DNA from: Hemiscyllium ocellatum | Lineage: Eukaryota | Assembly (NCBI RefSeq): GCF_020745735.1 | Contig: NC_083439.1 | Coordinates: forward strand, 23,450,596-23,514,595 | Direction of reading: 5' to 3' | DNA length: 64,000 nt | Shown here: piece by piece, positions 6,919 to 59,578 of the stretch | Position numbering within the stretch: the first letter of the stretch is position 1 | Layout of the letters: the number at the start of each line of letters is the position of its first letter | Notes under the pieces: generated by a model | What the model was told of the DNA's origin: nothing | Databases searched by the model: none | Seen by the model: only the letters and a program-made list of their open reading frames with translations | Made by a program: the position numbers and the translations under genes

Positions 6919-7129
6919 GGAGAAAGTGAGGACTGTAGATGCTGGAGATCAGAGTTGAACCATGTGATGCTGGAAAAACACAGCAGGCCAGGCAGCATCC
7001 GAGGAGCAGGGGAATCGACGTTTCGGGCGTAAGCCGATTCCTGAAGAAGGCTTATGCCGAAACGTCGATTCTCCTGCTCCTCAGATGCTGTCTGGCCTGC
7101 TGTGCTTTTCCAGCATCACATTTTTCAAC
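6919..7129. mobile_element. Palindromic Penelope-derived mini-element with hammerhead core and 16-bp TSD
   Basis: TCCAAAGTCTGAAGAG at 6903-6918 and 7130-7145; inverted arms of about 80 nt; CTGAAGA-AGGCTTATGCC-GAAACGTC at 7041-7066. Confidence 0.85.
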
Positions 7130-12022: not shown

Positions 12023-14832
12023 CATCTAGAAAGGAATAGATTGATTACGGAGAGTCAACATGGTTTTATGAAGGTTAGGTCATGCCTCACAAACCTTACT
12101 GAGTTCTTTAAAAAGGTAACCAAACAGTGGATGAGGGTAAAGTGGTTGATGTGGTGTATATGGATTTCAGTAAGGCGTTTGATAAGGTTTCCCATGGTAG
12201 GCTATTGCACAAAATATAGATGCAAGGGATTGAGGATGTTTTAGCAGTTTGGATCAGAAATTGGCTAGCTGAAAGAAGACAGAGGGTGGTGGTTGATGGG
12301 AAATATTCATCGTGGAGTTCAGTTACTAGTGGGGTACCGCAAGGATCTGTTTTGGGTTTACTATTGTTTGTCATTTTTATAAATGACCTAGATGAGGGCA
12401 TAGAAGGATGAGTTAGTACATTTGCAGATGACACTAAGGTCGATAGAGTTGTGGATAGTGACAAAGGGTGTTGTAGGTTAGAGTCATAGAGTCATAGAGA
12501 TGTACAGCATTGAAACAGACCCTTCGGTCCAACCCGTCCATGCCGACCAGATATCCTACCCCAATCTAGTCCCACCTGCCAGCACCCGGCCCATATCCCT
12601 CCAAACCCTTCCTATTTATATACCCATCCAAATGCCTCTTAAATGTTGCAATTGTACCAGCCTCCACCATAGCCTCTGGCAGCACATTCCATACACATAC
12701 CACCCTCTGCGTGAAAAAGTTGCCTCTTAGGTCTCTTTTATATCTTTCCCCTCTCACCCGAAACCTATGCCCTCTAGTTCTGGACTCCCCGACCCCAGGG
12801 AAAAGACTTTGTCTATTTATCCTATCCATGCCCCTCATAATTTTGTAAACCTCTGTAAGGTTACCACTCAGCCTCTGACGCTCCAGGGAAAACAGCCCCG
12901 GCCTGTTCAACCTCTCTCTGTAGCTCAGACCCTCCAACCCTGGCAACATCCTTGTAAATCTTTTCTGAACCCTTTCAAGTTTCACAACACCTTTCCGATA
13001 GGAAGGAGACCAGAATTGCGTGTAATATTCCAACAGTGGCCTAACCAACATCCTGTACAGCTGCAACATGACCTCTCAACTCCTGTACTCAATACTCTGA
13101 CCAATAAAGGAAAGCATACCAAATGCCTTCTTCACTATCCTATCTATCTGCGACCCCACTTTCAAGGAGCTATGAACTTGCACTCCAAGGTCTCTTTGTT
13201 CAGCAATACTCCCTAGGATATTTCCATTAAGTCTGTAAGACCTGCTAAGATTTGCTTTCCCAAAATGCAGCACCTCGCATTTATCTGAATTAAACTCCAT
13301 CTGCCACTTCTCAGCCCATTGGCCCATCTGGTCAAGATCCTGTTGTAATCTGAGGTAACCCTCTTCGCTGTCCGCTACACCTCCAATTTTGGTATCAACT
13401 GCAAACTTACTAACTGTATCTCTTATGCTCACATCCAAATCATTTATGTAAATGACAAAAAGTAGAGGACCCAGCACCGATCCTTGTGGCACTCCACTGG
13501 TCACAAGCCTCCATCTGAAAAACAACGCTCCACCACCACCCTCTGTCTTCTACCTTTGACCCAGTTCTGTATCCAAATAGCTGGTTCTCCCTGTATTCCA
13601 TGAGATCTAACCTTGTTAATCAGTCTCCCATGGGGAACTTTGTTGAACGCCTTACTGAAATCCATATAGATCATATCTACTGCTCTGCCCTCATCAATCT
13701 TCTTTGTTACTTCTTCAAAAAACTCAATCAAGTTTGTGAGACATGCTCTCCCACGCACCAAGCCATGTTGACTATCCCAAATCAGTCCTTGCCTTTCCAA
13801 ATACATGTACATCCTGTCCCTCAGGATTCCCTCCAACAACTTGCCCACCACTGAGGTCAGGCTCACCGGTCTATAGTTCCCTGGCTTGTCTTTACCGCTC
13901 TTCTTAAACAATGGCACCACATTTGCCAACCTCCAGTCGTTCGGCATTTCACCTGTGACTATTGGTGATACAAATACCTCAGCAAGAGACCCATTACAGA
14001 GGTACATAAATAAGCTGCAGAGCTGGGCTGAGAGGAGGCAAATGGAGTTTAATGCTGAAAAGTGTGAAGTGACTGACATTGGAAGGAGTAACAGGAATGC
14101 AGAGTACTGGGCAAATGATAAGATTCTTGGTATTGTAGGTGAACAGAGACATCTCGGTGTCCAGGTGCATAGATCCTTGAAAGTTGCCACCCAGGTTGAT
14201 AGGGTTGTTAAGAAGGCATATAGTGTGTTTGTTTTTATTGGTAGAGGGATTGAGTTTTGGAACCATGAGATCATGCTGCAGCTGCTCAAAACATTGATGC
14301 GACCACATTTGGAGTATTGCATATAGTTCTGGTCATTTGTAGTATTGCATATAGTTCTGGTCACCGCATTATAGGAAGGATGTGGAAGCTTTGGAAAGCG
14401 TTCAGAGGAGATTTACCTCACCTTGTATGGAGGGAAGGTCTTACGAGGAAAGGCTGAGGGGCTTGAGACTGTTTTCTTAGAGAGAAGAAGTGACTTAATT
14501 GAGACATATACAATAATCAGAGGGTTAGATAGGTTGGACAGTAAGAGCCATTTTCCTCGGATGGCAATGGCTATCATGAGGGGATATAGCTTTAAATTAA
14601 GAGGTGATAGATATAGGACAGATGTCAGAGTAGTTACGTTACTCAGAGAGCAGTACGGGCGTGGAATGCACTGCCTCCAACATTAGTAGTAGACTCACCA
14701 ACATTAATGGTCGTTGGATAGGCATATGGACGAGAATGGAATAGTGTAGGTTAGATGGGCTTCCGATTGGTTTCACAGGTCGGTGCAACATCGAGGGCTG
14801 AAGGCCTATACTGTACAGTAATGTTCTAAGTT
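12023..14832 (+). mobile_element. 5'-truncated CR1 (element B), split by element C
   Basis: [17 protein letters not shown] and FADDTK to 12480; resumes as LQRYINKLQSWAERRQMEFN at 13994; 3' tail at about 14830. Confidence 0.88.
12481..13993 (-). mobile_element. Younger 5'-truncated CR1 (element C) nested in B
   Basis: Very similar to 1731-3258; (gagtcata) tail at 12481; TTA repeated at both junctions. Confidence 0.92.
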
Positions 14833-17935: not shown

Positions 17936-20900
17936 GTGAGGGATCGCCGTGGGCGGCTGTGCTCTGTGTTTGGAAATGGAGAGGGGAGCCCTGGTCTCTA
18001 CATTTGTTTCACAGGTAAAGCCCAGGCTGTCAGCTTCTGCTGTTACCATCCTAATTTCACCTCGTGTGCCCAGTCACTTTATCAAAGTGCCTTAAAGCCA
18101 CAAAACTATTTTCGTTACATAAATTGTTGGAAAAACTGAGCGGGTTTGGCGGAGAGAAATCACAGTTGACGTTTCGGATCCATTGGCCCTTCTTCAGAAC
18201 TGATGGTAACTGGGAAAAGATTGGTATTTATATAGAAGATGGAGAGGGGAAGAGTAAACTGCAGGTGGAGAGAGAGAGCCCAAAATGGGCTGCTACCACA
18301 CACAACCCGTTGTCAACTCCTATTGTAGCTGCTATTCATTTCCACAGACCATCACCTGATGAAGAAGCAGTGCTCCGAAAGGTAGTGCTTCCAATTAAAA
18401 CTGTCAGACTATAACTTGGTGTTGTGTGATTTTTAACTTCCCATAGACTGACCTTTAATCACGTGAATGTGGTATTGGCACAACCCTTAGAATAGTCCTC
18501 ATCCACAAATCATTTAAAAAGATTGTTAATGTATTGAGCTACATTAAATTTCTGTTTTTAGTTTATAAAAGAAGTAGAGAATGAATACATTTAATTTATT
18601 TTGGAATTGTGAACCTGCATTTAGATTCATAGAGTTATGTAGATATACAGCACAGAAACAGATCCTTCAGTCCACCACGACCATGTTGACCATTTGGCCC
18701 ATATCTCTCTAAAGTCTTCCTATCCCTATACCTATCCTGATGCCTTTTAAACGTTGTATTGTACCAATCTCCATAATTTCCTCTGGCAATCCATTCAATA
18801 CACTCACCACCCTTTGTTTGAAAAGTTGCCCTTTTTGTCTCTGTTAAATCTTTCCCCTCTCACTTTAAACCTATGCTCTCTAGTTTTGGACTCCCCCACA
18901 ATGTTTACCCTCTCCATGCCTCTCATGATTTTATAAACCTCTTATAAGATCATCCCTCAGTCTCTGACACTCGAAGAATAGTTGCAGCCTATTCAACCTA
19001 TAGCTGAAACCCTCCAGCCCTGCCAACATCCTTGTAAATCTTTTCTGAACACTTTCAAGATTCACAACACTCTTCCTTAGCAGGGACACCAGAATTGCAC
19101 ACAGTATTCCAATAGTGGCCGAATCAATGTCCAGTATAGCTGCAACATGACCTCCCAACTCCTATATTCAATGTACTGACCAATAAAGGCAAGCATACCA
19201 AATGCCACCTTCACTCTCCTATTTACTTGTAACTCCTCTTTCAAGGAACTATGAACCTGCAGTCCAAGGACTCTTTGTTCAGCAACACTCCCGAGGACCT
19301 TACTTTTAAGTATATAAGTCCTGTCCTGATTTGCCTTTCCAAAATGCATTTATCTAAATTAAACTTCATCTGCCAGCTTTTGCGCCATTGGCCCATCTGA
19401 TCTTCATTCTGTTGTACTCTGAGGTAACCTTCTTTGCTGTCGACTACACCTCCAATTTTGGTGTCATGTGCAAATTTACTAACCATACCTCCTATATTTA
19501 CATCCAAATCAATGAAAAACAGTGGACCCAGCACCGATCCTTTGGCACATTGCTGGTCACAGGCCTCCAGTGTGATAACCAACCCTCCATCTCCACCTTC
19601 TGACTTCTACCTTCGAGCCTTTGCCTCCAGATTTTGATTCCAAATTTTTTACTTTAACAGGTGAACTTTCCTCCATTTCTGTTTGAGGTAATATTATTTG
19701 CTTCTATTGATGAATCGAAAAGCTCTGCTAAAGTTGGCAATGATGTTGTTATCTTCACCTTGTGTAAGAAAGAATCAAGAATGTGGGAGCAACTTACAAC
19801 GGTCGAAGGTAAGCAATGATTTAGATATTTTGCTATATATTGAATCCTATAAAATTAAAATGGATATGAATTGCATTAGCAGTACTGCTCATGACAGTTA
19901 CTTTAAATTTTGTAGTTAGACATAACTAGGTTTTCTTTGCATCATATAATTACATTGACTGTTCTTTGATAGTTAGTAAGGAAAAGTTGCAGAAAAGGAG
20001 GGAGAATGCAATACTTGCTGCTCAAGAAAAGGCACAAGAGGCAGCAAAAGAAAAGGCAATTAAAAAACGAGAAAATGAGAAGTACTCATTGGAAAAGACA
20101 ATGAAGGTAACTATTGTAGAACTTGTTAAAATATTTAATTTTCTTTGTTGTGCACAATATTGTCTACTTAAAATAGACTTACTGACAGAGTAATTTGATA
20201 TAAAACTATGAATTCAAGCCATTTGTACAATAAAGCTAGAAAAGGAATTAAAGTCTCCAAAGTACAGTTCAAGATGACCAGCGTCATGGTAGTGTTGTAA
20301 CATAGTGATTTAATCAAAACAAGACTTTATCTTCCCTATGCAGATCTCGCACATTTTCTGTAATACTCTTTTCCTTTTTGACAATCCTATAAGATATAAA
20401 CTTAAAACTTGAGGATTGATAGTCAAAGGCTTGACTAATATAATCAAATGGAGTGGTGGTAATGTGAGACAATCATTCAAATGTTACAATCTCATTAATT
20501 CAAAGAATGTAAGATTGTATACATATACACTTTTATCCTTATTAGGCTTCTCTCATAGTTGTATGAAAAGCTTGTTGTATTAATGACTTTCAACCTTTTG
20601 TTTGACTTTGTTCCAAAGATCTAAAAGTTGAAGTTCTAAATTGGAGGAAGGTTAATATTGACGATAGTAGGCAAAAACTTTCAAAAGCTAATTGGGGGCG
20701 GATGTTTTCGGGTAAAGGGACAGCTGGAAAATGGGAAGCCTTCAGAAATGAGATAACAAGAATCCAGAGAAAGTATATTCCTGTCAGGGTGAAAGGGAAG
20801 GTAAAGGGAATGCTGGATGACTAGAGAAATTGAGGGTTTGGTTAAGAAAAAGAAGGAAGCATATATCAGGTATAGACAGGAGAGATCGAATGAATCCTTA

Positions 20901-23900
20901 GAGTATTAAGGCAGTAAGTATACTTAAAAGGGAAATCAGGAGGACAAGAAAGGGACATGGGATAGCTTTGGCAAATAGGGTTAAGGAGAATCCAAAGGGT
21001 TTTTACAAATACATAAGGACGAAAGGGTAAAAGGGAGACAATAGGGCCCCTTAATGATCAGCAAGGTGGCCTTTGTGTGGAGCTGCAGGAGATGGGGGAT
21101 ATACTAAACGAGTATTTTGTATCAGTGTTTACTGTGGAGATGGACATGAAAGATATAGAATGTAGGGAAATAGATGGTGTCATCTTGAAAAATGTCCATA
21201 TTACAGAGGAGAAAGTGCTGGATGTCTTGAAACACATAATGGTGGATAAATCCCAGGACCTGATCAGGTGTACCCTAGAACCCTGTGGGAAACTAGGAAA
21301 GTGATTGCTGGGCCTCTTACTGAGATATTTGTATCATTGATAGTCACAGGTGAGGTGCCAGAAGACTGGAGGTTGGCTAACGTGGTGCCACTGTTTAAGA
21401 AAAGTGGTAAGGACAAGCCAGGGAACTATAGATCAGTGAGCCTGACGTTGGTGGTGGGCAAGTTGTTGGAGGAAATCCTGAGTGACAGGATTTACGTGTA
21501 TTTAGAAAAGCAAGGACTGATTAGGGATAGTCAACACGGCTTTGTGCGTGGGTAATCATGTCTCATGAATTTGATTGAGTTTTTTGAAGTAACAAAGAGG
21601 ATTGATGAGGGCAGAGGGGTGGACATAATCTATATGGATTTAAATAAGGCATTCAACAAGGTTCCCCATGGGAGACTGCTTAGCAAGGTTAGATCTCATG
21701 AAATACAGGGAGAACTAGCCATTTGGATACAGAACTGGCTCAAAGATAGAAGACAGATGGTGGTGGAGGGTTGTTTTTCAGACTGGAGACCTGTAACCGG
21801 TGGAGTGCGACAAGGATCGGTGCTGGGTCCACTACTTTTCGTCATTTATGTAAATGATTTGGATGTGAACGTAGGAAGTATAGTTAGTAAGTTTGCAGAT
21901 GACACCAAAATTGGATAGTGAAGAATTTTGGACAGTGAAGAAGATTACCTCAGAATACATCTCAGAGGAATCTTGATTAGATGGGCCAATGGGCTGAGGA
22001 GTGGCAGATGGAATTTAATTTAAGTAAGTGCTGCATTTTGAGAAAGCAAATCTTAGCAGGAGGTAAGGTCCTAGGGAGTGTTGCTGAACAAAGAGACCTT
22101 GGAGTGCTAGTTCATAGCTCCTTGAAAGTAGAGTTGCAGGTAGATGGGATAGTGAAGAAGGCATTTGGTATGCTTTCCTTTATTGGTCATAGTATTGAGT
22201 ATAGGAATTGGGAGGTCATGTTGCGGCTGTACAGGATGTTGGTTAGGCCACTTTTGGAATATTGCATGCAATTCTGGTCTCCTTCCTATTGAAAGAATGT
22301 TGTGAAACTTGAACGGATTCAGAAAAAATTTATAAGGATGTTGCCAGAGTTGGAGGATTTGAGTGTAGGGAGAGGCTGAATAGGCTGGGGCTGTTTTCCC
22401 TGGAGCATCGGAAGCTGAGGAGTGATCTTTTAGAGGTTTGTAAAATCATGAGTGGCATGGATAGGATAAATAGACAAAGTATTTTCCCTGGGGTGGGGGA
22501 ATTCCAGAACTAGAGGGCATAGGTTTAAGGTGAGAGGGGAAAGATATAAAAGAGACCTAAAGGGCACCTTTTTCATGCAGAGAGTGGTACGTGTATGGAA
22601 TGAGTTGCCAGAGGAAGTGGTGGAAACAATTGCAATATTTAAAGGCATCTGGATGTGTATATGAATAGGAAAGGTTTAGAGGGATATGCGCCAAGTGCTG
22701 GCAAATGGGAGCAGATTAGGTTGGGATAACCGGTTGGCATGGGCAAGTTGGAATGAAGGGGTCTGTTTCTGTGCTGTACATCTCTATAACTAATTCTTCA
22801 CTCAACATACATTACCCATGAATACAAACTTGGAACAAATTACATGCTGGTGGATGCTTTGGATTATGTCAACAATTTGCCTCCATTTTTCATATTTTAA
22901 TTCTTTTATCTTACAGTTATAATCCTAGCAAAGGTGTAAACTAGGTCAACTGTAAGAGGATTTATTTATGGTTGGGCCGGTAGCCTAATTGCATTGTGGC
23001 GAGAGAGAATTCTCCAAAGTTTACTCTGTAATCAGTATCTTCTGTTATCTACTGAATCTGATTGTACAGATTAACATTTCTTCTTTCTTTCACACGACAT
23101 ATGTCATGCCTCAGTTTTTCATACCTTTTCTATCTGAAGTATGCTTATTAGATTTACATTTTCTATGCTAGCAATCCATAAAGTATTAATGTCATTTTCA
23201 TTTCTACTTTTCCCACCAACATTGCAATATGCATTACTAAAAATGTAGAAATACTTAAAACACTCTTTAATCTTCATTGTAAAGCTAAAGTACATTCTGA
23301 TATGAAGTTTGTAGATTTAATTAGAATGAAATTTTTATAAACTTGTGTAATGAACCAGACCAAACCCCCTGAAAATATATCAAGAAGATAGTCTAGACCC
23401 TAAAGTCTTCTTATTTTAATGGTAAGTGTAAGGTGTTGCATTCCAGCTGCAATTCAATGGGTCAAGCTACTTGACTTCAAGCAAAATACACTTTATATTT
23501 ACACTATAGTTAAAATACAGATAGAATGAAAATAAAAGAAAAGAATTGACTTAACTGTAACCCTACTGAAATGGTTAACAAAAGAACATATATATTAACA
23601 ACCACTAATTAACTATTTCAATATAGTAACATCCCAAAAGCACATCCTTGGCAAAGGCAAATTTAGTAAAATAGATTGTCTCACATGCAATTCTAGCAGC
23701 AGGAAGAGAACCCCAGCTTTTAAGGAAAACAGAGAGGAAAATAAATCAGAGCTTCCACATCCAGCACCTGCAGAAAACCAGAACTAAACATCCTGGTTCT
23801 GTGGGAGCTTGATCCCACCCATTCAAGCTGCTTCTATTGTTCCAATTTGAGAAAACACCCAAGGTCTCACAACCTGTTTGCTTTATTAGCTTTCAGCAGA

Positions 23901-26900
23901 CTGCTTTGTGCCTCTATCTCAACCTTTCTTCATTTATAAAAAAAAGGACAAAAATACCTCTTAAAGCTGTAGTATTGTTAAAAGTGAGTCAGAAACTGAA
24001 AGTTTGACATAAACATGATTTTTCAGAATAATAAACTTGCACAACAATTGTACAGATAGAAGAACATGCCAGAAAACAGATTGAAGAGATGAAAGAACAA
24101 GAGCGCAGAAAAGCTACTGAAGAGTTGGAACAGTGGAAGCTGCAGAAGCATGAAGAAGAGAAATTAAAGAGAAAGGAGGAACTAAAGCATGCAAAGCAGA
24201 AAATTGAGGCAGAGAAAAGGAGGATGAAGAAGAAGGAAGAAGCCAAAATACAGAATTCTGACTCACGAACTTCAAACAAACATTCTGTTAAAGGAGGTAA
24301 GCCTATTTCAAATCAGTGATTTAATTCAGATTTCCTTCTATATAAAGACAAAATCAGCAAGAGAGAATTTTACATAACATTCACCCAAGTCTTAAGAATA
24401 CCCATAAAAGATGCAGCATGTGACATTAAGCTAAGTGGATTTCAGATTCATTGTACCTCTCGCTCATTTTAAGTTTTCTCCCTGCCTTTGGTTTCCTCCT
24501 TCCCTTATGCTCAACTACACTCTTAGCCAAGAGAGAGTTTAGGTTAGCCCATGTTAGTTGGAACAAAGTAACTAGTTTGTTGGAATATTCAAATGTACTG
24601 CCAGCATGACTGATCTGAGTCATACGGTAGGCGATTGGGTCTGGGTGGGTTACTCTTTGGAGGGTTGGTGTGGACTTGTTGTGCCGAAGAGTCTGTTTCC
24701 ACACTGTAAGGATTCTGCGATTCTATGCTGATTTGCTGATTTTGGGGATAAGTTGGGTGGAATGGGTTGATCTCTCTTTTGCAGCTTCTTTGCATGACTG
24801 AGTGTAGAATTTGATGTTTGGGGCTTTAAATTGGAATTTAGTGAATAATAAACCAGTATTCGATCCAAAAATCATGTTTACATTATGTCATTACTTGCTC
24901 TATGTATAAACAGGTATTATTATAGAAATGTATTTCTTTCTGTTGGATATTTCTTAAAGATACTTTATTATTTAGCTAAACAACTTACTTCATCAAAAAG
25001 CACTTTTTATTCATTCACGGGATGAGAGTGCCACTGGCTAGGCCAGCATTTATTGCTCATCCCAGAGGACAGTTAAAAGTCAACTACACTGCTGTGGTCT
25101 GGAGTCACATGTAGTCCTGGCGAAGTAAGGATAACAGTTTCATTCCCTAAAGGACATTAGTGAACTAATGGGTTTTTCCGACAAGGGACTCCTAATTCCA
25201 CATTTTTAATTGAATTTAAGTTCCATAATCTGCTGTGGCAGGATTCAAATCCAGATCCCTAGAACATTACTGGATCTCTGAATTAACAGTCCAGTGATAA
25301 TACCTCCCCTTTATTTGAGAGAAGACATTTCATCAATATACTGAGGACTGAGAAGTGAACATGCAACTGTACAGAATCTTCTGGTGCGATGTTTGACACC
25401 GAATGTGTTTAATATCTAATATGTGTAGCACTGTGACTTAACATCAGGATACAGCAACTCAAAAGAAAATCAGCAAATATTGTCATATTCTAAGATTTGA
25501 GTTTGCATATTTCTATGTCTTGTCCTGTTATGGTTATGGATTAGGTTTACAGTGAACGATAAACATGGCAATGTATTCAATTAAGATAAGCGTTCCTTTT
25601 TATACCGATGCTGTTGATTTTGTTTGACCAAACATCATATTTTCCATCCATGCTACTCTGCATATGGTTTGACCTCAAGATGGTGCTCTCCTCCAAAAAG
25701 GGACATCTTTCCTTGCAGAACCTACAAAGCCTGCCTACTAAAAAGGGTCATTCTGTCCAGAACATTTTCTGTATGAAAAATAATTAGATTATTCACAAGC
25801 AGCCAAAAACTCATCAAGAGCAGAAGAATAATGGCGTGGAGTTGTTACATCTAATCAAGCAGGTGTAATAAGCCATATGTAGCGTTCAAATATGAAAGTT
25901 GGCTGACCTCGCGTTTATTTTATTGTGACTTAGTGTTTAGTACTTTGCAGTTACAGTGCCACCTTGACATGACCACATTATCAGCTCCAATATCTTTTGT
26001 TTAAATAAGGTTAAATAAATTGGATTGGCATTAACTTTGGTTTTATTCATTCTACTTGACAGTGCATAGTTCAATGCCTTGAAGTTCCTTTTTCCGTATC
26101 GTAAAGATTTGATTATCAAGGAAGTCAGTTGCTTCCTGATGTATCTGTAGCAAATCTGTAGATCATATTAATAAAGGTACCTTTTCCTCCAATTTTAGTT
26201 CCTAACTGCAAACAAAAAGTATAATATTTTTTGCAGGATGGTATTTAATGGTTAACTTTTAACCATTGATTAATTGCAGGTACAGCTGCCAACATGTTTG
26301 CTGAAAACTACAATGACAAAATCATCCCAGATCCCCGTTCAGCTGGCAATATTGAAGTACAATTCACACCACGAGTTTTTCCTACAGCACTGAGAGAATC
26401 TCTTATTGCAGAGGAGGAAGAGGTTTGGGTTTTGTAAAAGTGAATACATTTCTTCAAACACACGCCTTAATCAATGGAGAAATTGTTTCTGGACCTGTGA
26501 ATCTCAGAAAACAAAGAAGTATTTATACATTGTTAACTCTGATGGTTTGGCAGCTCACGTAACTAGTTTAAATATCCGGTTAGAGATGAGTTTCAAATTG
26601 AAAGGATAAGGAAATTATGGTGGTTTTGTATTGATTTTAGTAAAACCTGTTGTTTGCAGAATAAAATAATAAGTAGAAGAAAATATTGCACCTCTAAGTA
26701 GGTGCTGGGAATTAAAATTTTTTTTTACATTTTAATTATCTTTTTCTCTCCTTTGTACTCACTTATACAGAGTTCCTCTTCAGTAGCATGAATAGGCAAA
26801 TTTATTTTGGGTTTCTGCCAGGTTTTAGTTTGTTATTGCTTGGGGTACAGGAATGCCATGATTACACTTGCATTACAATCTTACTTTGATGAATGTCATG

Positions 26901-34263: not shown

Positions 34264-34505
34264 AAGCAGGGTAAGAAATGTCAAGAATTTAGAGGTCTAT
34301 TCACAGAAAAAAAAAGTCCTTCAGCCCATTTTGTGTGCACTGGTCAAAAACAACCACCTAACAATTCTGTTCCCATTTACACGCACTTGGCCCATAGCCT
34401 TGTGTGCCTTTGCATTACAAGTGCACATCTAAATATTTACTGACAGTTAGTGTATTTCTGTCTTACACCTTCTGTTGGGGCATAAACATTGTTTTCAGAG
34501 GCATA

Positions 34506-34511
34506 AATAAA
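34506..34511 (+). terminator. Candidate DNAAF4 polyadenylation signal
   Basis: AATAAA about 240 nt after the stop, with a T/GT-rich tract downstream. Confidence 0.5.
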
Positions 34512-35092
34512 TCCAAAGCAATAATCCAAATCAGCCTTTGTTCGATTTTTCTGAGGAAAATTTGTAGTTAAATCAGTTTGAACTAAAAGATTTCTAGAGT
34601 CCTTGACTAATACTGCAATGTATTAATTAATGGTGCAATTGCATTTTTTTCTTTATGAGAAGCTGAAGACTTTTATTCGTTTGTGGTACTCCTTTTAGAA
34701 TTGAGTGTATGCCTTCATGGTCATGAGGTTGGAATATTTAATCGTATGCCTGTTACACAACCATTTTAGATCTGTTAGAACAGTTGCATTATAGAGTCTT
34801 CACCTGCTGAACATCTCCAGTTAAAACTGCAGCTGGCAGATGTTCTCTTTCACATGACTTTGGAATGACTATATCTCTGCCAAGAAATGTTGTTATTTGA
34901 AATTACTCGCTTGAGTCTCCAGTCAACCTTGCATCAACCTTGACTCCATTGTGGTGAAGCTTTATGAAATAACTCCACATAGGCTGTTATCCACCAAGTT
35001 GCCCTTTGTTTACCATGAAGAGTCCTTGGCACTGATCCAGCTCTGTAAAAGCCAGCTGTCAGAGTAACAGAATCTCTGACACTCCTGTTTAT

Positions 35093-35896
35093 TTTTTTAG
35101 ATTTCTTTTTTCTTATTTGCTTCTTTAGAGTGAACAGAATGTCTGACACTCTTGTTTTTTTTAACCCCGCACTACCGTCTAACTGTGGTAGTGCTTATTT
35201 TTTCCCCAGCACCATGTTGTGGGCGTGCAGGTATGAGGCACAGTGAAAGACACAAAGTGCATGAATCTTTATTCAAATTTCCACCACCAGGAAGAAAAGA
35301 AACACCCGAGTGGCCTGTGACAAGCAGTGCCCATACACTCCTGTTTATTTTTTTCTCTCCTAACTGCGGTAGTGCTTATTTTTCCCCCCAGCACCCATGT
35401 TGTGTGTGTGCAGGTGTGAACACTCCTGTTTTTTTCTTTCTTATTTCTTTTTTTTTCCTTGTCACTGATCCAATTCCCTCAGAGCCAGCTCAGAGTGAAC
35501 AGAACCTCTGACATTCCTGTTTATTTTATTTTATTATTTTTTTTCTTTTTTTAAAACCCTCACACTACTGCCTAACTGCAGTAGTGCTTATTTTTTCCCA
35601 GCACCCATGGTGTGTGCAGGTGTGAGACACAGTGAGAGACACAAGGTGCACGAATCTTTATTCAATTTCCACCACCAGGAAGAAAGGAAACACCCGAGTG
35701 GTAATCACATCAAAGGGCAATGCTGTGTGATCAAACAGTGAAGGGGAGGGCAGGGATTAAATAAAAATAGAGTTGGAGGGGGAAATGATGCACTCCACTC
35801 CCTGCAGCGCCCACCTCTCCCTGATCAACTCCAGGGTATTGGTGGACACCACGTGCTCCTTCTCCAAGGACATCCGAGCTCTAACGTAACCGCGGA
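35093..35896 (-). mobile_element. Tandem stack of three 5'-truncated Tx1/L1-clade retrotransposon 3' ends inside the Gypsy 3' LTR
   Basis: Copies at about 35553-35896, 35358-35419 and 35163-35334, each polyA-tailed. The longest encodes FRGYVRARMSLEKEHVVSTNTLELIRERWALQGVECIISPSNSIFI* (35897-35757), resembling a Tx1 ORF2 C-terminus. ACACTCCTGTTTAT recurs at every junction. Confidence 0.82.
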
Positions 35897-36402
35897 ACAC
35901 TCCTGTTTATATCTGACAGCTAAGCCTCCCTGATTGGGGCTGTTAATGTGGTCCAATCAGGGAACTCATTCTATGAGGTTCACCTGGCTGACCTTGTTAC
36001 TATCACTACATCCCTCTCCCTCTGATTCCAAGGGCATACGTTGGTTCTTTTTTTTTTGGCGCTACTCCTGGATCATTTTAGCACCAGGTCAGGTTCCTCC
36101 AACTTTGCCTCGCATATGGGGGCGTATAATGCACAATAGCTTGCCTCTTGAACCTGGACCGTGTCGGGAAAAATGCATTCTGCACTTCAGTCAGCAAAGG
36201 TGTCGGCAGCAACACCTGCATGTCCATTTCAGATTCCGAGGTATCTGGGTTCCAGAACAGTCCGAAAAGCAGTCAAGAAGCCGGGGATGTTTTGCTCCTG
36301 CGCCATTTGTGAGTTTGCGGCTTTCATATGGTCAACATTCTTTTTCAGGACCGTCACATCTGCATGAACTTTCTAGGTTACTGGACCTGATCTTACATTA
36401 AG

Positions 36403-36530
36403 CAAAAGTGAGGACTGCAGATGCTGGAAACCAGAGTTTAGATCAGAGTGGTGCTGGAAAAGCACAGCAGCTCAGGCAGCATCTGAGGAGCAGGAAAATC
36501 GTTTTGGGCAAAATCCCTTCATCAGGAATA
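36403..36530 (-). mobile_element. Penelope pLTR fragment inside the Gypsy element
   Basis: Same sequence family as the pLTRs at 47465-47596 and 49730-49825. Confidence 0.75.
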
Positions 36531-39500
36531 TTCAAGCCCAGTGCTGAATTTTGCCTGAACCTATGGGCAGCACTGCCTTGCCTTCTTTATGTCGACATAA
36601 CAAGGTTTATTAATGTGTTATTATTTCAAATTTACGTCTGTAAAGATATTGGTAGAACTTCCTGACTTCAAATATGATTGCCAAACCTTCCTTGTCTATC
36701 TGGGTATATTTATGTTCTGCATAAACCAAAGTCCTGGATGTATATGCCATTGGGTGTTCCTCTCAATTGGGCCACCTCTGAGCTAATACTACCCCGATGC
36801 TATGTGGGGAGGCATCACATGTTAATACCAGACCTTGCTTGGGATGATAGTGTGCCAACTCCTTAGAGTATGATAGCTGTTTCCCTTCTCTGAAGGCTAT
36901 ATGACTTGGCTATGCAACCATTTCCAAGGCTGACCCTTTTTTAAGAATTGATGCAAAGATGTCAGGATGGAGGCCTGGTTATGTATGAACTTTCAGTTAA
37001 TAGCACTTCATCTTGGTAAATGGTGACCTGTGGTAAACCTCATAAAACATTCTCCATCAACTGCTGAAAAATTGCACAGGCTGATGATACCCTAAACAGC
37101 AGACTTGTATATTGATACAAATCCTTATGGGTATTAAGTGTTGCATTTTTCTGGGAATCCTCTTCTGACTGCAATTGCAAGTGCACATGGCTGATATTCT
37201 GCTTTGTGAAGAATAGTTCCCCTTCCAGCTTTGTGTATAAATCCTCTATGTGTGGGATTAGGTATTTCTCCAGCTGTAAAAAGCAGTTTATCATTTGTTT
37301 AAAATAGCCAGAAAGATGAATCAACCTTCACAATCAGTGCAACTGGTGCTGCCAATTCCGCAAACAGAATTCCGCTGGTTTGATGATTCCTTCGCTGTCC
37401 AATCTGCTTGTTTATGTCTCTACTTATGCCCGTAAGGGAAATGGCACTGGGTGGACCCCTCAGAATTGTGGAATTGCTTCCTGGTCAATGTGCAAGGTGA
37501 CCTTGGTGCTTTTGATTGTTCCTTGACCTTCCTGAAAAATCCAGGCATTTAATTAAGATTTCACTCAGGCTGCCATTTTCTATTCAAAAAATGTTGAGCC
37601 AATCCAGGTGAATCTTCCTCAACCAATTTTGCCCCATCAAGCTTGGGCCCAAGCATTTTACTACAATCAGTAGTAACTGAACCAGCTGTTTCTCATCAGA
37701 GACCAAAGCTGAAGTTGCACCCTTAATATGTAAAGATTCCCTTGTATAGGTTCTCAATTAAGCTGAAGTCTTGTGCAAATTTAAGAGTTGGAGTCGAGTG
37801 AATTTTGTTAAAGACTGGTTCTGTGATCACTGAAATGGCCACACCAGTATTGACCTCCATTAGAATTGGACGACCATTTAACTAGACATTTTATTTGATT
37901 GGTGCTGATTTGGATGTTGCTAAGCAGTTTAACTGTTCCAAACCAGATATAGGTGGTCTTTCCATGGTGTGCACTCTCCTGGATACCAGCCTATGAGTTC
38001 ACTTACTCAATTTAAAGTCTAGTAAGACTCTTTTGCTCCGTACCAGCAGCAACTACAATGGTTTTCTGGCCTGGATTCTGAAGAAAATTTCAACCATTTG
38101 GTCGAGATTTGGTTTTGTTTTGGGGTTTTGTTGTGGGCTGACCTCGAGTCTTTCTGTTGAGGATATGTCCTGAGTAAGGCTGTGCAATTGCCTTTACTCA
38201 AGCGATGTTTCCCCCAAACACAGTTGGATGGCAAGAGTGTCCAATTCCTTCGGAATACTCTGCAACTCACATGCTCCACTTTCTGCATTTTCTAATGACA
38301 CAGCTAGTTGGAGTGCCATTTGAAGTCCACTTGGGCTTCAGATAGTGATGCTTTTGCATGGTTACATCATTCATTCCGCATACCAAACAGTTCCTCAGCA
38401 TCTCATTAAAGGTTTAAACCAAAGTCATCTGCCTCTGCCATCATCTTAACCCAGTCAGAAATCTCAATACAGATTCCCCTGGTTCTCAAATCGCTGAGTA
38501 AAACTGATAACATCTTAGAGTTAGGGGATGCTGGGGTCATAATATTCCTTATCTAAATATGTCAACTCTTGAAAGGTGCCTCAGGAAAAGTTAGGCTCCT
38601 AATAACTGAAAATGCTATGGGTCCACAAGCTGTCAGGGAAATTACTTGTTGCTTGTCATCTGCCCCAGTGCCATTTGCCTGAAAAGAAACAAGTCTCCGA
38701 CGGCAGGATTGAATGGGTCAAGTTTTCCAAATAGCAACATGATGCCAGAAATGCTTACTCCAGCTCAAAGATGACTGTTGTGAGCCAATTTCTTTAGGAG
38801 CATGGTTTTTCTCTCATCACCGCTGAAATAACTCCACAGAGGTTGGAATCTTGTCACCAACTCGCCCATTATTTACATGTGAAGAGTCTTGCCACTAAGC
38901 TAGCTCCTTCAGAGCCAGCTGAACAGAATCTCTGACACTTTTTAAAAAAATATCTATCTTCCCAGGGCTTCCTAATTGGATCTGATTACAACTTCAATCA
39001 GGGAACTCATATTCTATGAGGTCCATCTGGCTGACCTCATTTCTATCATTACACTTTACACTTGATTTCCAACTGGACTACCGTGACTGTTCCGTTAGTT
39101 TTTCCTAAAAGTGTCTGTGGAGAAGTTGAAGACAAAACCAAGCTTAATTGAAATACTCTTGATAAAGTAATAGGTGCCAATTAAAGATATAAACCACATT
39201 TTATATAGTGGCGTGTCATGTTCAATACCCAGCAAATGGACAAATGCAACTCATCTCCAACACATTGAATTCCACATTTCACTGCCACATGATACACTGC
39301 ATCTGAACAACAACCCCCTTGGGAAAGGGGAGTTGATAATTTCAATCATTAATCAGTCAATTTTAGTGTAATTAACACTGCTTTTTCAATTTGACTGTGG
39401 ATCTCAAGTGTTTGCTAAACTTCTTCGTGAAAATAGGGTTAATACACAGCAATTAAGGGACTGAACTCATGACAGGAAAACCTGCCCTGAAATCTTACAG

Positions 39501-46092: not shown

Positions 46093-47596
46093 CCCCAGCT
46101 ATGCCTGTCTCTTCGTAGGAGCATGGGCCCCAGCTATGCCTGTCTCTTCGTAGGATATGTGGAACAGTCCATCTTCCGCAACTACACTGGCACCACCCCC
46201 CACCTTTTCCTCCGCTACATCGATGACTGTATCAGCGCTGCCTCGTGCTCCCACGAGGAGGTTGAACAGTTCATCAACTTTACTAACACCTTCCATCCCG
46301 ACCTCAAATGTCTCAGACTCCTCCCTCCCCTTCCTAGACCTTTCCATCTCTATCTTAGGTGACCGACTCAACACAGACATCTACTATAAACCGACTGACT
46401 CCCACAGCTACCTGGACTACACCTCCTCCCACCCTGCCCCCTGTAAAAACTCCATCCCATATTCCCAATTCCTTCGTCTCCGCCGCATCTGCTCCCAGGA
46501 GGACCAGTTCCAACACCGTACAGCCCAGATGGCCTCCTTCTTCAAGGACCGCAGATTCCCCCTAGACGTGATCGACGATGCCCTCCACCGCATCTCCTCC
46601 ACTTCCCGCTCCTCTGCCCTTGAGCCCCGCTCCTCCATCCGCCACCAAGACAGAACCCCACTGGTTCTCACCTACCACCCCACCAACCTCCGCATACAAC
46701 GTATCATCCGCCGTCCTTTCCGCTACCTCCAAACGAACCCCACCACCAAGGATATATTTCCCTCCCCTCCCCTATCAGCGTTCCGCAAAGACTACTCCCT
46801 TCGTGACTCCCTCGTCAGGTCCACACCCCCCACCAACCCAACCTCCACTCCCGGCACCTTCCCCTGCAACCACAGGAAATGTAAAACTTGCGCCCACACC
46901 TCCTCCCTCACTTCCCTCCAAGGCCCCAAGGGATCCTTCCATATCCGCCACAAGTTCACCTGCACCTCCACACACATCATCTATTGCATCCGCTGCACCC
47001 GATGTGGCCTCCTCTATATTGGGGAGACGGGCCGCTTACTTGCGGAACGCTTCAGAGAACACCTCTGGGACGCCCGGTCCAACCACCCCGTGGCTCAACA
47101 CTTTAACTCTCCCTCCCACTCCACCGAAGACATGCAGGTCCTTGGACTCCTCCATCGGCAGAACATAACAACACGACGGCTGGAGGAGGAGCGCCTCATC
47201 TTCTGCCTGGGAACCCTCCAACCACAAGGAATGAACTCCGATTTCTCCAGTTTCCTCATTTCCCCTCCCCCCACCTTGTCTCAGTCGGTTCCCTCAACTC
47301 AGCACCGCCCTCCTAACCTGCAATCTTCTTCCTGACCTCTCCGCCCCCACCCCACTCCGGCCTATCACCCTTACCTTGACCTCCTTCCACCTATCACATC
47401 CCCATCGCCCCTCCCCCAAGTCCCTCCTCCCTACCCTTTATCTTAGCCTGCCTGGCACACTCTCCTCATTCCTGATGAAGGGCTCTGGCCCGAAGCGTTG
47501 AATTTCCTGTTCCTTGGATGCTGCCTAACCTGCTGTGCTTTAACCAGCAACACATTTTCAACTGTGATCTCCAGCATCTGCAGACCTCACTTTTTA
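46093..47596 (+). mobile_element. 5'-truncated Penelope-like element (RT C-terminus, GIY-YIG endonuclease, pLTR), inserted in a Deu-type SINE
   Basis: FLRYIDD, LPFLD, YYKPTDSHSYL, CNHRKCKTCAH, LYIGETGRLLAERFREH; TSD CTGGAGT (46086-46092 and 47597-47603); hammerhead-like core at 47472-47499. Confidence 0.93.
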
Positions 47597-49729: not shown

Positions 49730-51867
49730 TCTGGATCAGTGGTGCTGGAAGAGCACAGCAGTTCAGGCAGCATCCAACGAGCAGCGAAATCGACGTTTCG
49801 GGCAAAAGCCCTTCATCAGGAATAAAGGCAGTGAGCCTGAAGCGTGAAGAGATAAGCTTGGGGAGAGAGTAGCATAGAGTACAATAGGTGAATGGGGGAG
49901 GAGATGAAGGTGATAGATCAGGGAGGAGAGGGTGGAGTGGATAGGTGGGAAAGGAGCTAGCAGGTCGGACAAGTCCAGACAAGTCATGGGGACAGTGCTG
50001 AGCTGGAAGTTTGAAACTAGGAAGAGGTGGGGGAAGGGGAAATGAGGAAGCTGTTGAAGTCCACATTGATGCCCTGGGGTTGAAGTGTTCCGAGGTGGAA
50101 GATGAGGCGTTCTTCCTCCAGGCGTCTGGTGGTGAGGGAGCGGCAGTGAAGGAGGCCCAGGACCTCCATGTCCTCAGCAGAGTGGGAGGGGGAGTTGAAA
50201 TGTTGGACCACAGGGCGGTGTGGTTGATTGGTGCGGGTGTCCCGGAGATGTTCCCTAAAGCGCTCTGCTAGGAGGCGCCCAGTCTCCCCAATGTAGAGGA
50301 GACCACATCGGGAGCAATGGATACAATAAATGATATTAGTGGAAGTGCAGGTAAAACTTTGATGGATGTGGAAGGCCCCATTAGGGCCTTGGATAGAGGT
50401 GAGGGAGGAGTTGTGGGCACAGGTTTTGCAGTTCCTGCGGTGGCAGGGGAAAGTGCCAGGATGGGAGGGTGGGTCGTAGGGGGGCGTGGACCTGACCAGG
50501 TAGTCACGGAGGGAATGGTCTTTGCGGAAGGCGGAAAGGGGTGGGGAGGGAAATATATCCCTGGTGGTGGGGTCTTTCTGGAGGTGGCGGAAATGTCGGC
50601 GGATGATTTGGTTTATGCGAAGGTTTGTAGGGTGGAAAGTGAGCACCAGGGGCGTTCTGTCCTTGTTACGGTTGGAGGGATGGGGTCTGAGGGCGGGGGT
50701 GCGGGATGTGGATGAGATGCGTTGGAGGATCATGTGGGAAGGGAAATTGCAGTCTATAAAGAAGGAAGCCATTTGGTGTGTTTTATGGTGGAACTGGTCC
50801 TCCTGGGAGCAGATACGGCGGAGGCGGAGGAATTGGGAATACGGGATAGCATTTTTGCAAGAGATAGGGTGGGAAGAGGTGTAATCCAGGTAGCTGTGGG
50901 AGTCGGTGGGTTTGTAAAAAAATGTCAGTGTCAAGTCGGTCATCATTAATGGAGATGGAGAGGTCCAGGAAGGGGAGGGAGGTGTCAGAGATGGTCCAGG
51001 TAAATTTAAGGTCAGGGTGGAATGTGTTGGTGAAATTGATGAATTGCTCAACCTCCTCATGGGAGCAAGAGGTGGCGCCAATGCAGTCATTAATGTTACG
51101 GAGGAAGAGGTGGGGAGTGGTGCCGGTGTAATTACGGAAGATCAACTGTTCTATGTAGCCAACAAAGAGACAGGCATAGCTGGGGCCCATACATGTGCCC
51201 ATGGCTACCCCTTTGGTCTGGAGGAAGTGGGAGGATTCAAAGGAGAAATTGTTAAGGGTGAGGACCAGTTCGGCCAAACGAATGAGAGTGTCAGTGGAAG
51301 GGTACTGTTGGAGACGTCTGGAGAAGATAAACGGAGGGCTTGGAGGCCCTGATCATGGCGGATGGAGGTGTAGAGGGATTGGATAACCATGGTGAAGATG
51401 AGGCATTGGGGGCCAGGGAAACGGAAGTCTTGGAGGAGGTGGAGGGCGTGGGTCGTGTCTCGAACGTATGTGGGGAGTTCCTGGACTAGGGGGGATAGGA
51501 CAGTGTCGAGGTAGGTAGAGATGAGTTCAGTGGGGAAGGAGCATGCTGAGACAATGGGTCGGCCAGGGTGGTCAGGCTTGTGGATCTTGGGAAGGAGGTA
51601 GAACCGGGCAGTGCGGGGTTCCCGAACAATGAGGTTGGAAGCTGTGGGTGGGAGATCTCCTGAGGTGATGAGGTTCTGTATGGCCTGGGAGATGATGGTG
51701 ATGGGGGGTGGGGTCATGGTCGAGGGGGCAATAGGAAGAGGTGTTTTTGAGTTGGCGTTTGGCTTCAACGGTGTAGAGGTCAGTGCGCCAGACTACCACT
51801 GCGCCCCCTTTATCCGCTGGCTTAATGGTGAGGTTGGGATTGGAGCAGAGGGATTGGAGGGCTGTGT
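49730..51867 (-). mobile_element. 5'-truncated Penelope-like element (RT plus GIY-YIG plus pLTR)
   Basis: FYLLPKIHKPDHPGRPIVS, QTKGVAMG and LYIGETGR; 14-bp TSD GTTATGGAAGTGGT (49716-49729 and 51868-51881); intact hammerhead core at 49792-49819. Confidence 0.93.
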
Positions 51868-51986: not shown

Positions 51987-54238
51987 TTTGATTTGATTTG
52001 ATTTATTGTCACATGTATCGAAGTACAATGAAAAGCTTTGAGTACAAGCAGAACGTAGGAAGCACAGATGTACGGACATGATGTACAGATCAAAAAAACT
52101 TAGACAGAGGCATACAGGTTACATTGCACAGGGTGTGCTCTGGGTGAGATCAGCATTATTTGAAGCTAGAGAGTCCATTCATCAGTCTAATAATGGCTAG
52201 GAAGAAGCTGTTCCTGAACCTGCTGGTGCATTTGTTCAGGTTTCTGTATCTTCTGAAGAAGGGCTCATGCCCGAAACGTTGATTCTCCTGCTCCTTGGAT
52301 GCTGCCTGACCTGCTGCATCAAAAAGTGTGATGCTGGAAAAGCACAGCCAGTCAGGCAGCATCCAAGGAGCAGGAGAGTTGACGTTTTGAGCATGAGCTC
52401 TTCATCAGGAATGAGGTGATGGCCCAAGGGTGCTGCTAGATAAATGGAGGAGGGGGAGCAGGGCTGCTGGGGGAAGGTAGCTGGAAATGCCATTGGTAAA
52501 TGAAGCTGGGGGGTGATGGTGATAGGTTGAGGAGGAGGGTGAAGCAGATAGGTAGGAAGGAAGACAGACAGGTAGGCCAGTTCAAGAGGGTGTTGCTGAG
52601 TTGGAAGGTTGAATCTGGGATAAGGTGGGGGGGAAGGGAAAATGAGGAAACTATTGAAATCCACATTGATGCTGTGTGGCTGGAGGGTTCCAAGGCAGAA
52701 GATGAGGCATTCTTCCTCCAGGCGATGGGTGGCTAGCGTTTGGCAGTGGAGGAGGCCCAGGACTTGCATATCCTGGGAGGGGGAGTTAAAGTGTTCGGCT
52801 GTAGGGTAGTGGCATTGTTTAGTGCGTGTGTCCCAGAGATTTTATATGAAATGTTTCACAAGTTGATGTCCTGTCTCCCCAATATAGAGGAGACCACATC
52901 GGGAGCAACGGACACAGTAGATGACATATGCAGAAGTACAGATAAATCTTTGTCGGATGTGGAAGGATTCTTTGGGGTGTTAAACGGAGGTGAATGGGGT
53001 GGTGTACGTGCAGGTTTTACACTTCTTATGGTGGCAGGGAAAGGTGCTGGGAGTGGAGAGTAGGTTGGTGGGGGTGGGGGAAATGTGGATCTAACAAGGG
53101 AGTTGCGGAGGGAATTATTTCTGCGGAATGCAGAGAGGGATTGGGAGGGAAATATGTCCCTGGTGAGAGGGGTCTCTTTGTAGGTGATGGAAATGGCAGA
53201 GGATGATATGTTGTATCTGGAGGTTGGTGGGGTGGAAGATGAGTACTGGGGGAGTTCTGTCCTTGTTGTGATTGGAGGGGTGGGAAGAGGAGGAGATATG
53301 CTGGAGGGCATCATCAACCACATGGGAGGGGAAATTGCGGTTCTTGAAGAAGAAGGCCATCTGTGGTGGAATTGGTTCTGGGAGAAGATGCGGAGGAATT
53401 GGGAGTAAGGGATAGCATTTTTACGGGCATCACGGTGGGAGGAGGTGCAATCTAGGTAGCTTTGGGAATTGGTGGGTTTGATGTAGATCCGTGTTGAGCT
53501 GGTCGCTGGAAATGGAGATGGAGAGGTCCAGGAAGGAGAGGGAGGTGTCTGAGATGGTCCAGGTGAACTAGAGAGGTGATATTGGAAGGTGTTAGTGAAG
53601 TTGATGAACTGTTTAACCTCCTGGTGGGTGCATGAGGTGGCGCCAATACAGTTATCAATGTAGCGGAGGAAAAAGTGGGGAATGGTACCAGTGTAGCTGC
53701 GGAAGATGGACTTTCCATGTACCTGACAAAGAGGCAGGCATAGCTGGGGCCCATGCAGGTGCCCATGGCTACTCTCTGGTCTGGAGGAAATGGGAGGTTT
53801 TGAAGGAGAAATTGTTAAGGGTGAGGACCAGTTCAGTCAGTTGAATGTGTCAGTGGAAGGGTATTGGTTGGGTCGGCGGGAGACAAAGAAAATGAGGGCT
53901 TGGAGGCATTTATCATGGCAATGGATGAGTACAGGGACTGGATGTGACTGGTGAAGTTGAGGCATTGGGGGTCGAGGAAACAAAAGTCATGGAGGAGGTG
54001 GAGGGCATGGATGGTGTCTGAATGTATGTGGGGAGATTCTGCACCGAAAGGGACTGGATGGTGTCAAGCGTTGACTTCTGTGGTGGTCTAGGCACTGCAC
54101 ACCACCTTCTGTCGTTTCTTACAGTCCTGGGCAGAGCAGTTGCCATACCAGGCCATTATGCACCCAGAGAGTACGCTGTCAATGGTTGCATTTGTAGAAG
54201 TTGGTGAGGGTCCTTATGGACTTGCCACATTTCCTTGT
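51987..54238 (-). mobile_element. Rex1/Babar LINE 3' part (pieces 51987-52252 and about 54072-54238) split by a Penelope element
   Basis: RRYRNLNKCTSRFRNSFFLAIIRLMN and DSVLSGCIMAWYGNCSAQD; (AAATC)n tail. Confidence 0.75.
52253..54068 (-). mobile_element. Older Penelope-like element with an inverted pLTR piece at its end
   Basis: Decayed RT and GIY-YIG frames; inverted hammerhead-containing segment at 52253-52320. Confidence 0.88.
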
Positions 54239-57225: not shown

Positions 57226-57424
57226 GGTCCCTTTCAATAGGAAAGTTCAGGTCTTCCCAGGTGGAACACGGTTTTTACACGGTCCTTTCTGCTCCTGGTT
57301 TCCAGCACCCGCAATTCTTTGTTTTGTTTCCCCCCTTTCTGGGGCGTTCACAGACCCCTGCAGCTCCCCTTTGGCCAAGTACCAGTTTGACTGTGAAGTG
57401 AAGCAGTATCCAGAGGGAAATATT

Positions 57425-59377: not shown

Positions 59378-59578
59378 AAAATGTGTTGCTGGAAAAGCGC
59401 AGCAGGTCAGGCAGCATCCAAGGAGCAGGAGAATCGACGTTTCGGGAAAAGATTACTGAAGAAGGGCTCATGCCCAAAACGTCGATTCTCCTGCTCCTTG
59501 GATGCTGCCTGACCTGCTGTGCTTTTCCAGCAACATACTTTCAGCTCTGATCTCCAGCATCTGCAGACCTCACTTTCT
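59378..59578. mobile_element. Palindromic Penelope-derived mini-element with 17-bp TSD in CCPG1 intron 1
   Basis: CCTAACTGCTGTTTTTG at 59361-59377 and 59579-59595; near-perfect inverted arms; core has GAAA changed to AAAA. Confidence 0.88.

Follow-up and report, generated by a model that had tools for sequence, protein, structure and literature searches.

The window analysed here is a stretch of 64,000 nucleotides (nt) from the shark Hemiscyllium ocellatum (RefSeq assembly GCF_020745735.1, contig NC_083439.1, positions 23,450,596 to 23,514,595), and the subject of this report is a retrotransposon on its minus strand whose 3′ long terminal repeat (LTR) is interrupted by a block of inserted DNA. 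This block contains three copies, designated X_A, X_B and X_C, of a second element, X, which are separated by copies of a 14-nt sequence (the 14-mer) of the LTR. The initial annotation of the locus had proposed that a site-specific retrotransposon of the Tx1 clade repeatedly targets the TATA box of a Gypsy LTR, and the analysis described below points to repeated and precise retroposition into this site. The features of the locus are as follows, with positions counted from the first letter of the window.

34960–34964, minus strand: left copy of the target-site duplication of the LTR element (CTTTA on the plus strand); an identical 5-mer lies at 39054–39058, outside the LTR ends.
34965–35078, minus strand: 3′ LTR, repeat/unique 5′ (R/U5) side, downstream of the insertion site and ending in TTTCA; aligns to 38824–38939.
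35079–35092, minus strand: 14-mer copy a (exact match), the outermost duplicated target, contiguous with the LTR.
35093–35162, minus strand: composite of an A-rich tail (35093–35126), 19 nt of LTR (35127–35145), 14-mer b with two mismatches (35146–35159) and a short A-run; read as the transduced 3′ end of X_C or as a tail-only insert with a 33-nt duplication.
35163–35334, minus strand: X_C, a 172-nt 5′-truncated copy of X, 87% identical to X_A over 153 nt.
35335–35348, minus strand: 14-mer copy c (exact).
35349–35419, minus strand: X_B, a 64-nt copy (35356–35419) with a short A-tail, 86% identical to X_A.
35420–35433, minus strand: 14-mer copy d (one mismatch, at the tail boundary).
35434–35552, minus strand: composite of an A-rich tail (35434–35456), 54 nt of LTR (35457–35510), 14-mer e with one mismatch (35511–35524) and the 28-nt tail of X_A (35525–35552).
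35553–35896, minus strand: X_A, a 344-nt 5′-truncated copy with a 10-bp hairpin 12 nt before its tail; the family sequence is longer in contigs.
35897–35910, minus strand: 14-mer copy f (exact), still joined to the TATA box of the LTR and to its unique 3′ (U3) part.
35911–36010, minus strand: 3′ LTR, U3 side, starting with TGTAGTG, with two CCAAT motifs in a palindrome and then TATAAA; aligns to 38995–39053.
36011–36024, minus strand: polypurine tract directly upstream of the 3′ LTR, a purine run abutting the TG of the LTR.
36025–38823, minus strand: degraded internal part of the LTR element, with a nested repeat of about 130 nt at about 36405–36530 and an RT_RNaseH / RT_RNaseH_2 match at 36610–36750 (minus strand, E = 1e-11).
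38824–39053, minus strand: 5′ LTR with an empty, diverged site at about 38934–38955; 85% identical to the 3′ LTR minus its inserts.
39054–39058, minus strand: right copy of the target-site duplication of the LTR element, matching the left copy.

The whole 3′ LTR including the block occupies 34965–36010, and the inserted block accounts for 804 nt of it. When the minus strand is read from U3 to R/U5, the order is 14-mer f, X_A and its tail, 14-mer e with 54 nt of LTR and a second A-rich tail, 14-mer d, X_B and its tail, 14-mer c, X_C and its tail, 14-mer b with 19 nt of LTR and a second A-rich tail, 14-mer a, and finally the rest of the LTR.

Self-BLAST revealed that both flanks of the block have matches elsewhere in the window (34965–35083 with 38824–38939, and 35954–36010 with 38995–39053), and in the sister LTR at 38824–39053 these flanks are contiguous, with no insert between them. 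The two LTRs measure 228 and 230 nt and are 85% identical in aligned columns once the 804-nt block is removed. Both lie on the minus strand, where they start with TGTA and end with TTTCA (TG..CA ends), and they are enclosed by the 5-bp duplication CTTTA. The internal region carries the remnant of an RNase H domain on the minus strand (Pfam PF17917/PF17919, E = 1e-11), upstream of which reverse transcriptase-like and protease-like pieces of open reading frames (ORFs) follow in the expected order, recognized by eye only and without a Pfam score. An integrase and a clear primer-binding site were not found in the host element, and a PDB sequence search with the reverse transcriptase-like and RNase H pieces gave no useful match. 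The host is called an LTR retrotransposon because of its paired LTRs, the 5-bp duplication, the polypurine tract and the RNase H remnant, and it is one old, internally deleted copy on the minus strand. The structural hallmarks of Ty3/Gypsy elements (a TG..CA LTR pair, a duplication of 4–6 bp and a polypurine tract) are all present, and with the Pfam RNase H match they make the designation Gypsy-like plausible. Since the 5′ LTR is empty, the block at 35093–35896 arrived after the host element had integrated.

To extend the analysis beyond the window, Logan assembly contigs of four runs from three shark species (runs X1 and X2 from organism A, X8 from organism B and X9 from organism C) were mapped on the locus. 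The cut-off for likeness was 80–85%, and many copies of this LTR family, which is old (the sister LTRs are 85% alike), fall below it. Run X2 contains the locus itself in a 1402-nt contig with no differences, which makes organism A the probable source species. Contig depth falls to the left of about 34965, and the family contigs lose agreement past 36010. The U3 part of the LTR is much deeper in contigs than the R/U5 part in all runs and may be shared with other repeat families; the U3 palindrome with its two CCAAT motifs lies at 35926–35968, where contigs give joints between opposite strands.

With at most two mismatches allowed, the 14-mer has six matches in the 64-kb window, at 35079, 35146, 35335, 35420, 35511 and 35897, all of which are on the plus strand and together span 832 bases (35079–35910). 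Shuffled sequence contained a mean of 0.65 matches, and six were reached in 0 of 100 shuffles. On the plus strand, a T-rich run comes after each of the first five copies. The first 12 nt (plus strand reading) are the same in copies a, c, d and f, and internal mismatches are found in copies b and e, the ones with attached LTR sequence. Read on the minus strand, the site is TATAAACAGGAGTGT, which lies 98 nt into the LTR and downstream of the two CCAAT motifs and takes in the last bases of a TATAAA; from this position in the LTR, we infer that it is the promoter TATA box. The uppermost insert begins 9 nt past the TATAAA hexamer and runs in the same direction as the LTR. The 14-mer is native single-copy sequence of the LTR and not sequence of X, as the empty-site continuations and the contig loose ends at 35963 show. 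In the 5′ LTR the corresponding empty target at 38934–38955 reads ACACT, T5 A7, TATCT in place of the 14-mer and is diverged or scarred. A 14-mer-like motif at 32285 (plus strand), which is without LTR context, was dropped as a chance match.

With regard to X, self-BLAST showed that 35553–35896 is repeated at 35163–35313 (87%) and 35359–35423 (86%). The three copies agree in the region of the 3′ end, which carries an A-rich tail, and differ in their 5′ ends; a poly(A) or A-rich 3′ tail combined with 5′ truncation is characteristic of Tx1-type elements. All three 5′ junctions are at the same position, after GTGT, and each tail runs into a 14-mer; the identity of these junctions means that both strands were broken at the same nucleotides each time, with a duplication of 13–14 nt. 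X_A is without about 20 nt that X_C and the family keep, as the contig loose ends at 35332 and 35705 show; X_B and X_C further share a 4-nt indel state, not found in X_A, that corresponds to a family polymorphism at 35609 in contigs. Given these indel differences, the three copies derive from different source elements. X_A is itself shorter than the family, in that contigs extend 5′ of 35896 with one sequence (agreement 0.97, loose end at 35897).

Most of the structural claims of the initial annotation were recovered by these comparisons. Its six exact or near copies of the 14-mer lie at the same six positions, the T-run that it described after the first five is present at all five, and its three same-orientation 5′-truncated copies of about 345, 60 and 170 nt measure 344, 64 and 172 nt on the minus strand. 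The upstream-most insert, placed by it about 10 nt below the TATA box and in the direction of the LTR, starts 9 nt after TATAAA. The annotation had also considered that the 14-mer might belong to the ends of the element; the 14-mer was found in the LTR consensus and not in the element. Its view that the copies are independent insertions, and not a tandem duplication, agrees with the truncation points, the difference of about 20 nt and the 4-nt indel state.

A hairpin is located near the 3′ end of X (35566–35587 in X_A, with a z-score of -3.1, and 35171–35193 in X_C). At one pair, X_A has T-A where X_C and most of the family have C-G; this apparently compensatory change hints that the 3′ structure of X is under constraint. 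X_B, which ends in the hairpin loop and lacks the 3′ arm, shows no hairpin and was inserted all the same. No Rfam match, including those to small nuclear RNA (snRNA) and transfer RNA (tRNA), was found in 34500–39500 at E up to 1. A 46-codon frame of X_A was tried as the end of an ORF and rejected because, in two species, the family consensus has a stop shortly before it; among the three frames of X_A examined, a single one stays open past the 5′ truncation point, and its 23 codons are too few for a protein search. X may represent the 3′ untranslated region or 3′ end of a long interspersed element (LINE), or a non-coding partner that shares the tail and hairpin of such an element. Several small assemblies that were guessed to be RNA (X15–X20, from four organisms) hold 36–46% of the sampled X_A words, which makes transcription of X-like sequence probable, at least within other transcripts.

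The contigs also allow an estimate of how often the same site is used at other loci. Among the rows listed, LTR contigs that reach the 14-mer and enter a T-run outnumber those that continue into the U3 of an empty site in all three species (52 vs 22 in X2, 38 vs 17 in X8, 58 vs 32 in X9 and 3 vs 1 in X1). The T-run class comprises contigs with 20 or more T (the 7 local T plus 14–21 more), and the counts are approximate and come from the listed rows, in addition to which 177 further rows exist. The filled share of LTR contigs covering the 14-mer amounts to 32–49% by summed depth and to approximately 64–70% of contigs among the rows listed, and these ratios have been downgraded because contig depth is not equivalent to copy number. 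The sequence past the T-run is heterogeneous (agreement 0.44–0.46), and in run X1 it reads as the 3′ end of X. In one contig of organism A from another place, a truncated X is followed by a motif resembling the 14-mer, a T-run and a further X, and joints that go back from a 14-mer and T-run to a short LTR piece with another 14-mer are present at other loci in all three species. Taken together, the contigs offer good evidence that the LTR site has been struck recurrently and independently.

The best explanation of the locus, to which we assign a probability of about 0.7, is repeated, precise retroposition into the LTR TATA site. According to this explanation, poly(A)-tailed non-LTR retroposons X would be copied in by target-primed reverse transcription, and the LINE-type endonuclease involved would prefer a single sequence, located around the TATA box in a family of short Gypsy-like LTRs. 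The plus strand was opened directly after CCTGTTTAT, the T-rich 3′ end at the nick abuts the tail of every insert, and the opposite break lies 13–14 nt away each time. Since the breaks are staggered by 13–14 nt, each event duplicates the 14-mer and restores the site, and later events therefore stack in one orientation. The 804-nt block in the 3′ LTR is the product of at least three events, which drew on three different source copies and took place after integration of the host. The machinery would be that of a Tx1-clade LINE, an assignment made by elimination among the vertebrate LINE clades, as Tx1 is, to our knowledge, the only one of them with poly(A) tails, sequence-specific targets and fixed duplications. 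The LTR would serve as a harmless multicopy landing pad.

The stack contains two stretches that call for an additional step. Downstream (minus strand) of the 14-mers at 35146 and 35511 there are 19 and 54 nt of LTR sequence, respectively, each followed by a further A-rich tail. The 54-nt piece together with 14-mer e is 83% identical to the local LTR at 35023–35092, and it has the family-majority bases where the local LTR differs. Such A-tailed LTR pieces could be 3′ transductions, in which the transcript of an X copy resident in another LTR would have read through and been polyadenylated about 20 nt further on, in response to an AATAAA signal that the insertion itself would form from the tail plus TAAAC. 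The 19-nt piece ends 27 nt after the AATAAA hexamer, and LTR pieces at other loci in the three species are mostly 5–20 nt long, with ends 13–28 nt after AATAAA. Another reading of these stretches fits equally well: five events instead of three, the newest at the R/U5 side, two of them tail-only inserts, with duplications of 14, 68, 14, 14 and 33 nt, of which those of 33 and 68 nt would belong to the tail-only inserts. This five-event series is favoured by a AAATAAGAAA-like motif in both extra tails and by one contig joint with just 9 T-rich bases between two 14-mers. Whether the pieces are transductions or long duplications, the position of the first nick does not change. Long duplications with every new insert placed next to U3 were rejected as a model, as it is X_B, and not LTR sequence, that precedes the 54-nt LTR piece.

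In a further elaboration, which we regard as unlikely, this LTR site would be the basis of the whole life cycle of X and its LINE partner, both being obligate "parasites of a parasite": the CCAAT and TATA motifs just upstream of the newest copy could drive its transcription, the downstream copy of the TATA box would become the AATAAA signal, and read-through RNAs would return to other LTR sites, making the stacks self-propagating. If X borrowed the promoter of the LTR, as the initial annotation suggested it may, the start site expected from the TATA box would fall 10–16 nt inside an insert.

Several observations weigh against repeated, precise retroposition as outlined above. BLAST of X and the LTR flanks detected no further copy of X in the 64-kb window, with the sister LTR as the only other LTR match, and the genome-wide evidence is therefore indirect. 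No sequence of an apurinic/apyrimidinic (APE) endonuclease or a reverse transcriptase for X is present at the locus, and its membership of the Tx1 clade, as given in the initial annotation, is putative. At 54 nt, the longer LTR piece exceeds the spacing expected from an AATAAA signal, and the motif common to the two extra tails is explained equally well by transduction and by tail-only inserts with long duplications. With respect to abundance, approximately 19,000–26,000 contigs per run map on 1.2 kb, nearly all of them on X, vs 110–487 per run on the 136-nt LTR flank, so that X contigs exceed LTR contigs by well over tenfold, and contig depth is greater in the middle of X than at its 3′ end. 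Moreover, the A-rich tail region was skipped as a repeat, and the fill was thus measured from the side of the target. The abundance gap suggests that there are many X-like sequences elsewhere, that X shares sequence with a larger repeat, or that stacks are typically deep, and strict specificity of X for this LTR is doubtful. Of the site-specific element claimed in the initial annotation, the recurrent and precise hits on the LTR site thus hold in three species, but strict specificity is in doubt, given that X contigs far outnumber LTR contigs.

Alternative origins of the block differ in how they account for its junctions. It is quite unlikely that all or most of the 804 nt arrived as one composite, that is, as a single read-through retrocopy in which only the outer 14-mers (35079 and 35897) represent a local duplication; the site preference would hold in this case as well. 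Read-through into LTR flanks does seem to occur (35127–35159 and 35457–35524), stacks are found at other loci in contigs, and the inner 14-mers at 35146 and 35511 are mismatched, as expected of foreign copies. However, over the first 12 nt the inner 14-mers at 35335 and 35420 do not differ from the outer ones, in contrast to those beside LTR pieces; in addition, the transcript would need to pass several tail-plus-AATAAA signals uncleaved. An ordinary, non-specific insertion of the L1 type, with the TATA box and old poly(A) tails forming a local hot spot and the copies piling up by chance, is very unlikely. The L1 endonuclease prefers TTTT/AA, which the nick site TTTAT/AT resembles, and Alu and L1 commonly insert into older tails; the far greater abundance of X than of the LTR by contigs would also be in line with such an origin. 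Non-specific L1-type insertion is characterized by a variable duplication length and a loose TTTT/AA preference, whereas the junctions here are identical and a single site recurs: every event has its breaks at the same nucleotides and the same 13–14-nt duplication, none lies inside an older tail, and one-third to two-thirds of the detectable LTR copies in the three species are filled at the exact position.

Direct repeats such as the 14-mers can mediate unequal exchange, and the A-rich tails beside the two LTR pieces resemble each other, both of which would suit a local tandem duplication or unequal crossing-over of one insert between 14-mer repeats, followed by deletions. Against such an origin, the distinct 5′ end of each X copy abuts a 14-mer exactly, X_C keeps family sequence that is absent from X_A, the indel state of X_B and X_C is not found in X_A, and Tandem Repeats Finder reported only A/T-rich tails and no array beyond them. 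Judged from these sequence comparisons, tandem duplication of one insert is effectively excluded.

The initial annotation knew of no described case of an element that targets an LTR, yet Tx1 families in LTR retrotransposons are already on record, Tx1-8_Crp and Tx1-4_AMi being inserted preferentially into such elements (Kojima 2015, PMC4494074). The known targets of the clade also include a piggyBac element, snRNA genes, microsatellites, and Mariner and Harbinger transposons, and the families directed at transposons comprise Tx1L in Tx1D (Xenopus), the Tx1-Mar group in Mariner-N4_AMi and Tx1-9_AMi in Harbinger (PMC4494074). In the same study, an element was treated as target-specific if the same target occurred in >20% of its flanks, non-coding partners of Tx1 LINEs were found to share the target, and transcription from the flanking target was discussed (PMC4494074).

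Like the transposon-targeting Tx1 LINEs, which also mobilize non-coding partners to the same target, X occurs as poly(A)-tailed, 5′-truncated copies that all have the same orientation, occupy a single position of a multicopy transposon and are accompanied by a fixed duplication. Unlike in those cases, the setting is a shark genome, the insertions hit a Gypsy-like LTR of 230 nt in its TATA-box region, several inserts are stacked per site, and the clade of X is putative, with at most 344 nt of its 3′ part present; for the crocodilian LTR targets, the text of PMC4494074 does not state the position of insertion within the LTR element. SINEU-3 and other non-autonomous partners of Tx1 are likewise short non-coding retroposons found almost exclusively in the target of the partner LINE, and it has been proposed that their transcription may rely on the target beside them (PMC4494074), whereas X is seen only as 5′-truncated copies with the head missing and has no snRNA or tRNA match in Rfam. 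R1, R2 and other LINEs specific for ribosomal DNA or repeats resemble the present case in the precise and repeated use of one site and in read-through transcripts with target sequence, and in the R1/R2-type elements this likeness includes tandem stacking and co-transcription with the target. The duplication made by R1 measures 14 bp. R1 and R2 differ from X in that they use ribosomal RNA genes and belong to other clades; R2, moreover, lacks a poly(A) tail, and its endonuclease is of the restriction-like type. The 3′ transduction known from L1, in which read-through past a weak signal of the element to a downstream poly(A) signal carries flanking DNA along, would explain the A-tailed LTR pieces, with the difference that here the downstream signal would be formed by the insertion itself (tail + TAAAC = AATAAA).

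The locus does not constitute a new category, considering that Tx1-type elements targeting transposons, LTR elements included, are already known. Possible novelties are the lineage of the host, the precise position in the TATA box of a 230-nt LTR and the depth of stacking, and also the AATAAA-creating junction if it is confirmed. It represents a clean and well-delimited case of target-specific retroposition in cartilaginous fish, with a site used across at least three species, and it provides an empty and a filled LTR within one element, the filled one holding a stack from several source copies. Systems of this kind show how retroelements find harmless landing pads and point to natural sequence-specific endonuclease and reverse transcriptase machines, which are relevant to targeted DNA insertion. 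They also matter for genome annotation, where stacks would otherwise be mistaken for odd tandem repeats or mis-assembled LTRs.

Other elements were also detected in the window. A broken LINE reverse transcriptase lies at 12566–14364 on the minus strand (RVT_1, E = 1e-12 to 1e-13, in two adjacent ORFs) and has no DNA similarity to X. Two ORFs, 46157–47335 (plus strand, 392 amino acids) and 50017–51090 (minus strand, 357 amino acids), have weak GIY-YIG matches near the Pfam cut-off (E = 1e-4 and 3e-4, respectively) and look like Penelope-like elements in opposite orientation. The repeat of about 130 nt that is nested in the LTR element at 36405–36530 also occurs at 6923–7119, 47468–47594, 49738–49824, 52253–52412 and 59383–59576; with seven or more copies in the window, often in inverted pairs and adjoining the GIY-YIG ORFs, these repeats may be Penelope-like terminal repeats. 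Finally, the ORF at 56371–57237 (minus strand) contains a C-terminal PIRC1_2 (Piercer of microtubule wall) domain (E = 2e-12) and is probably an exon of a host gene.

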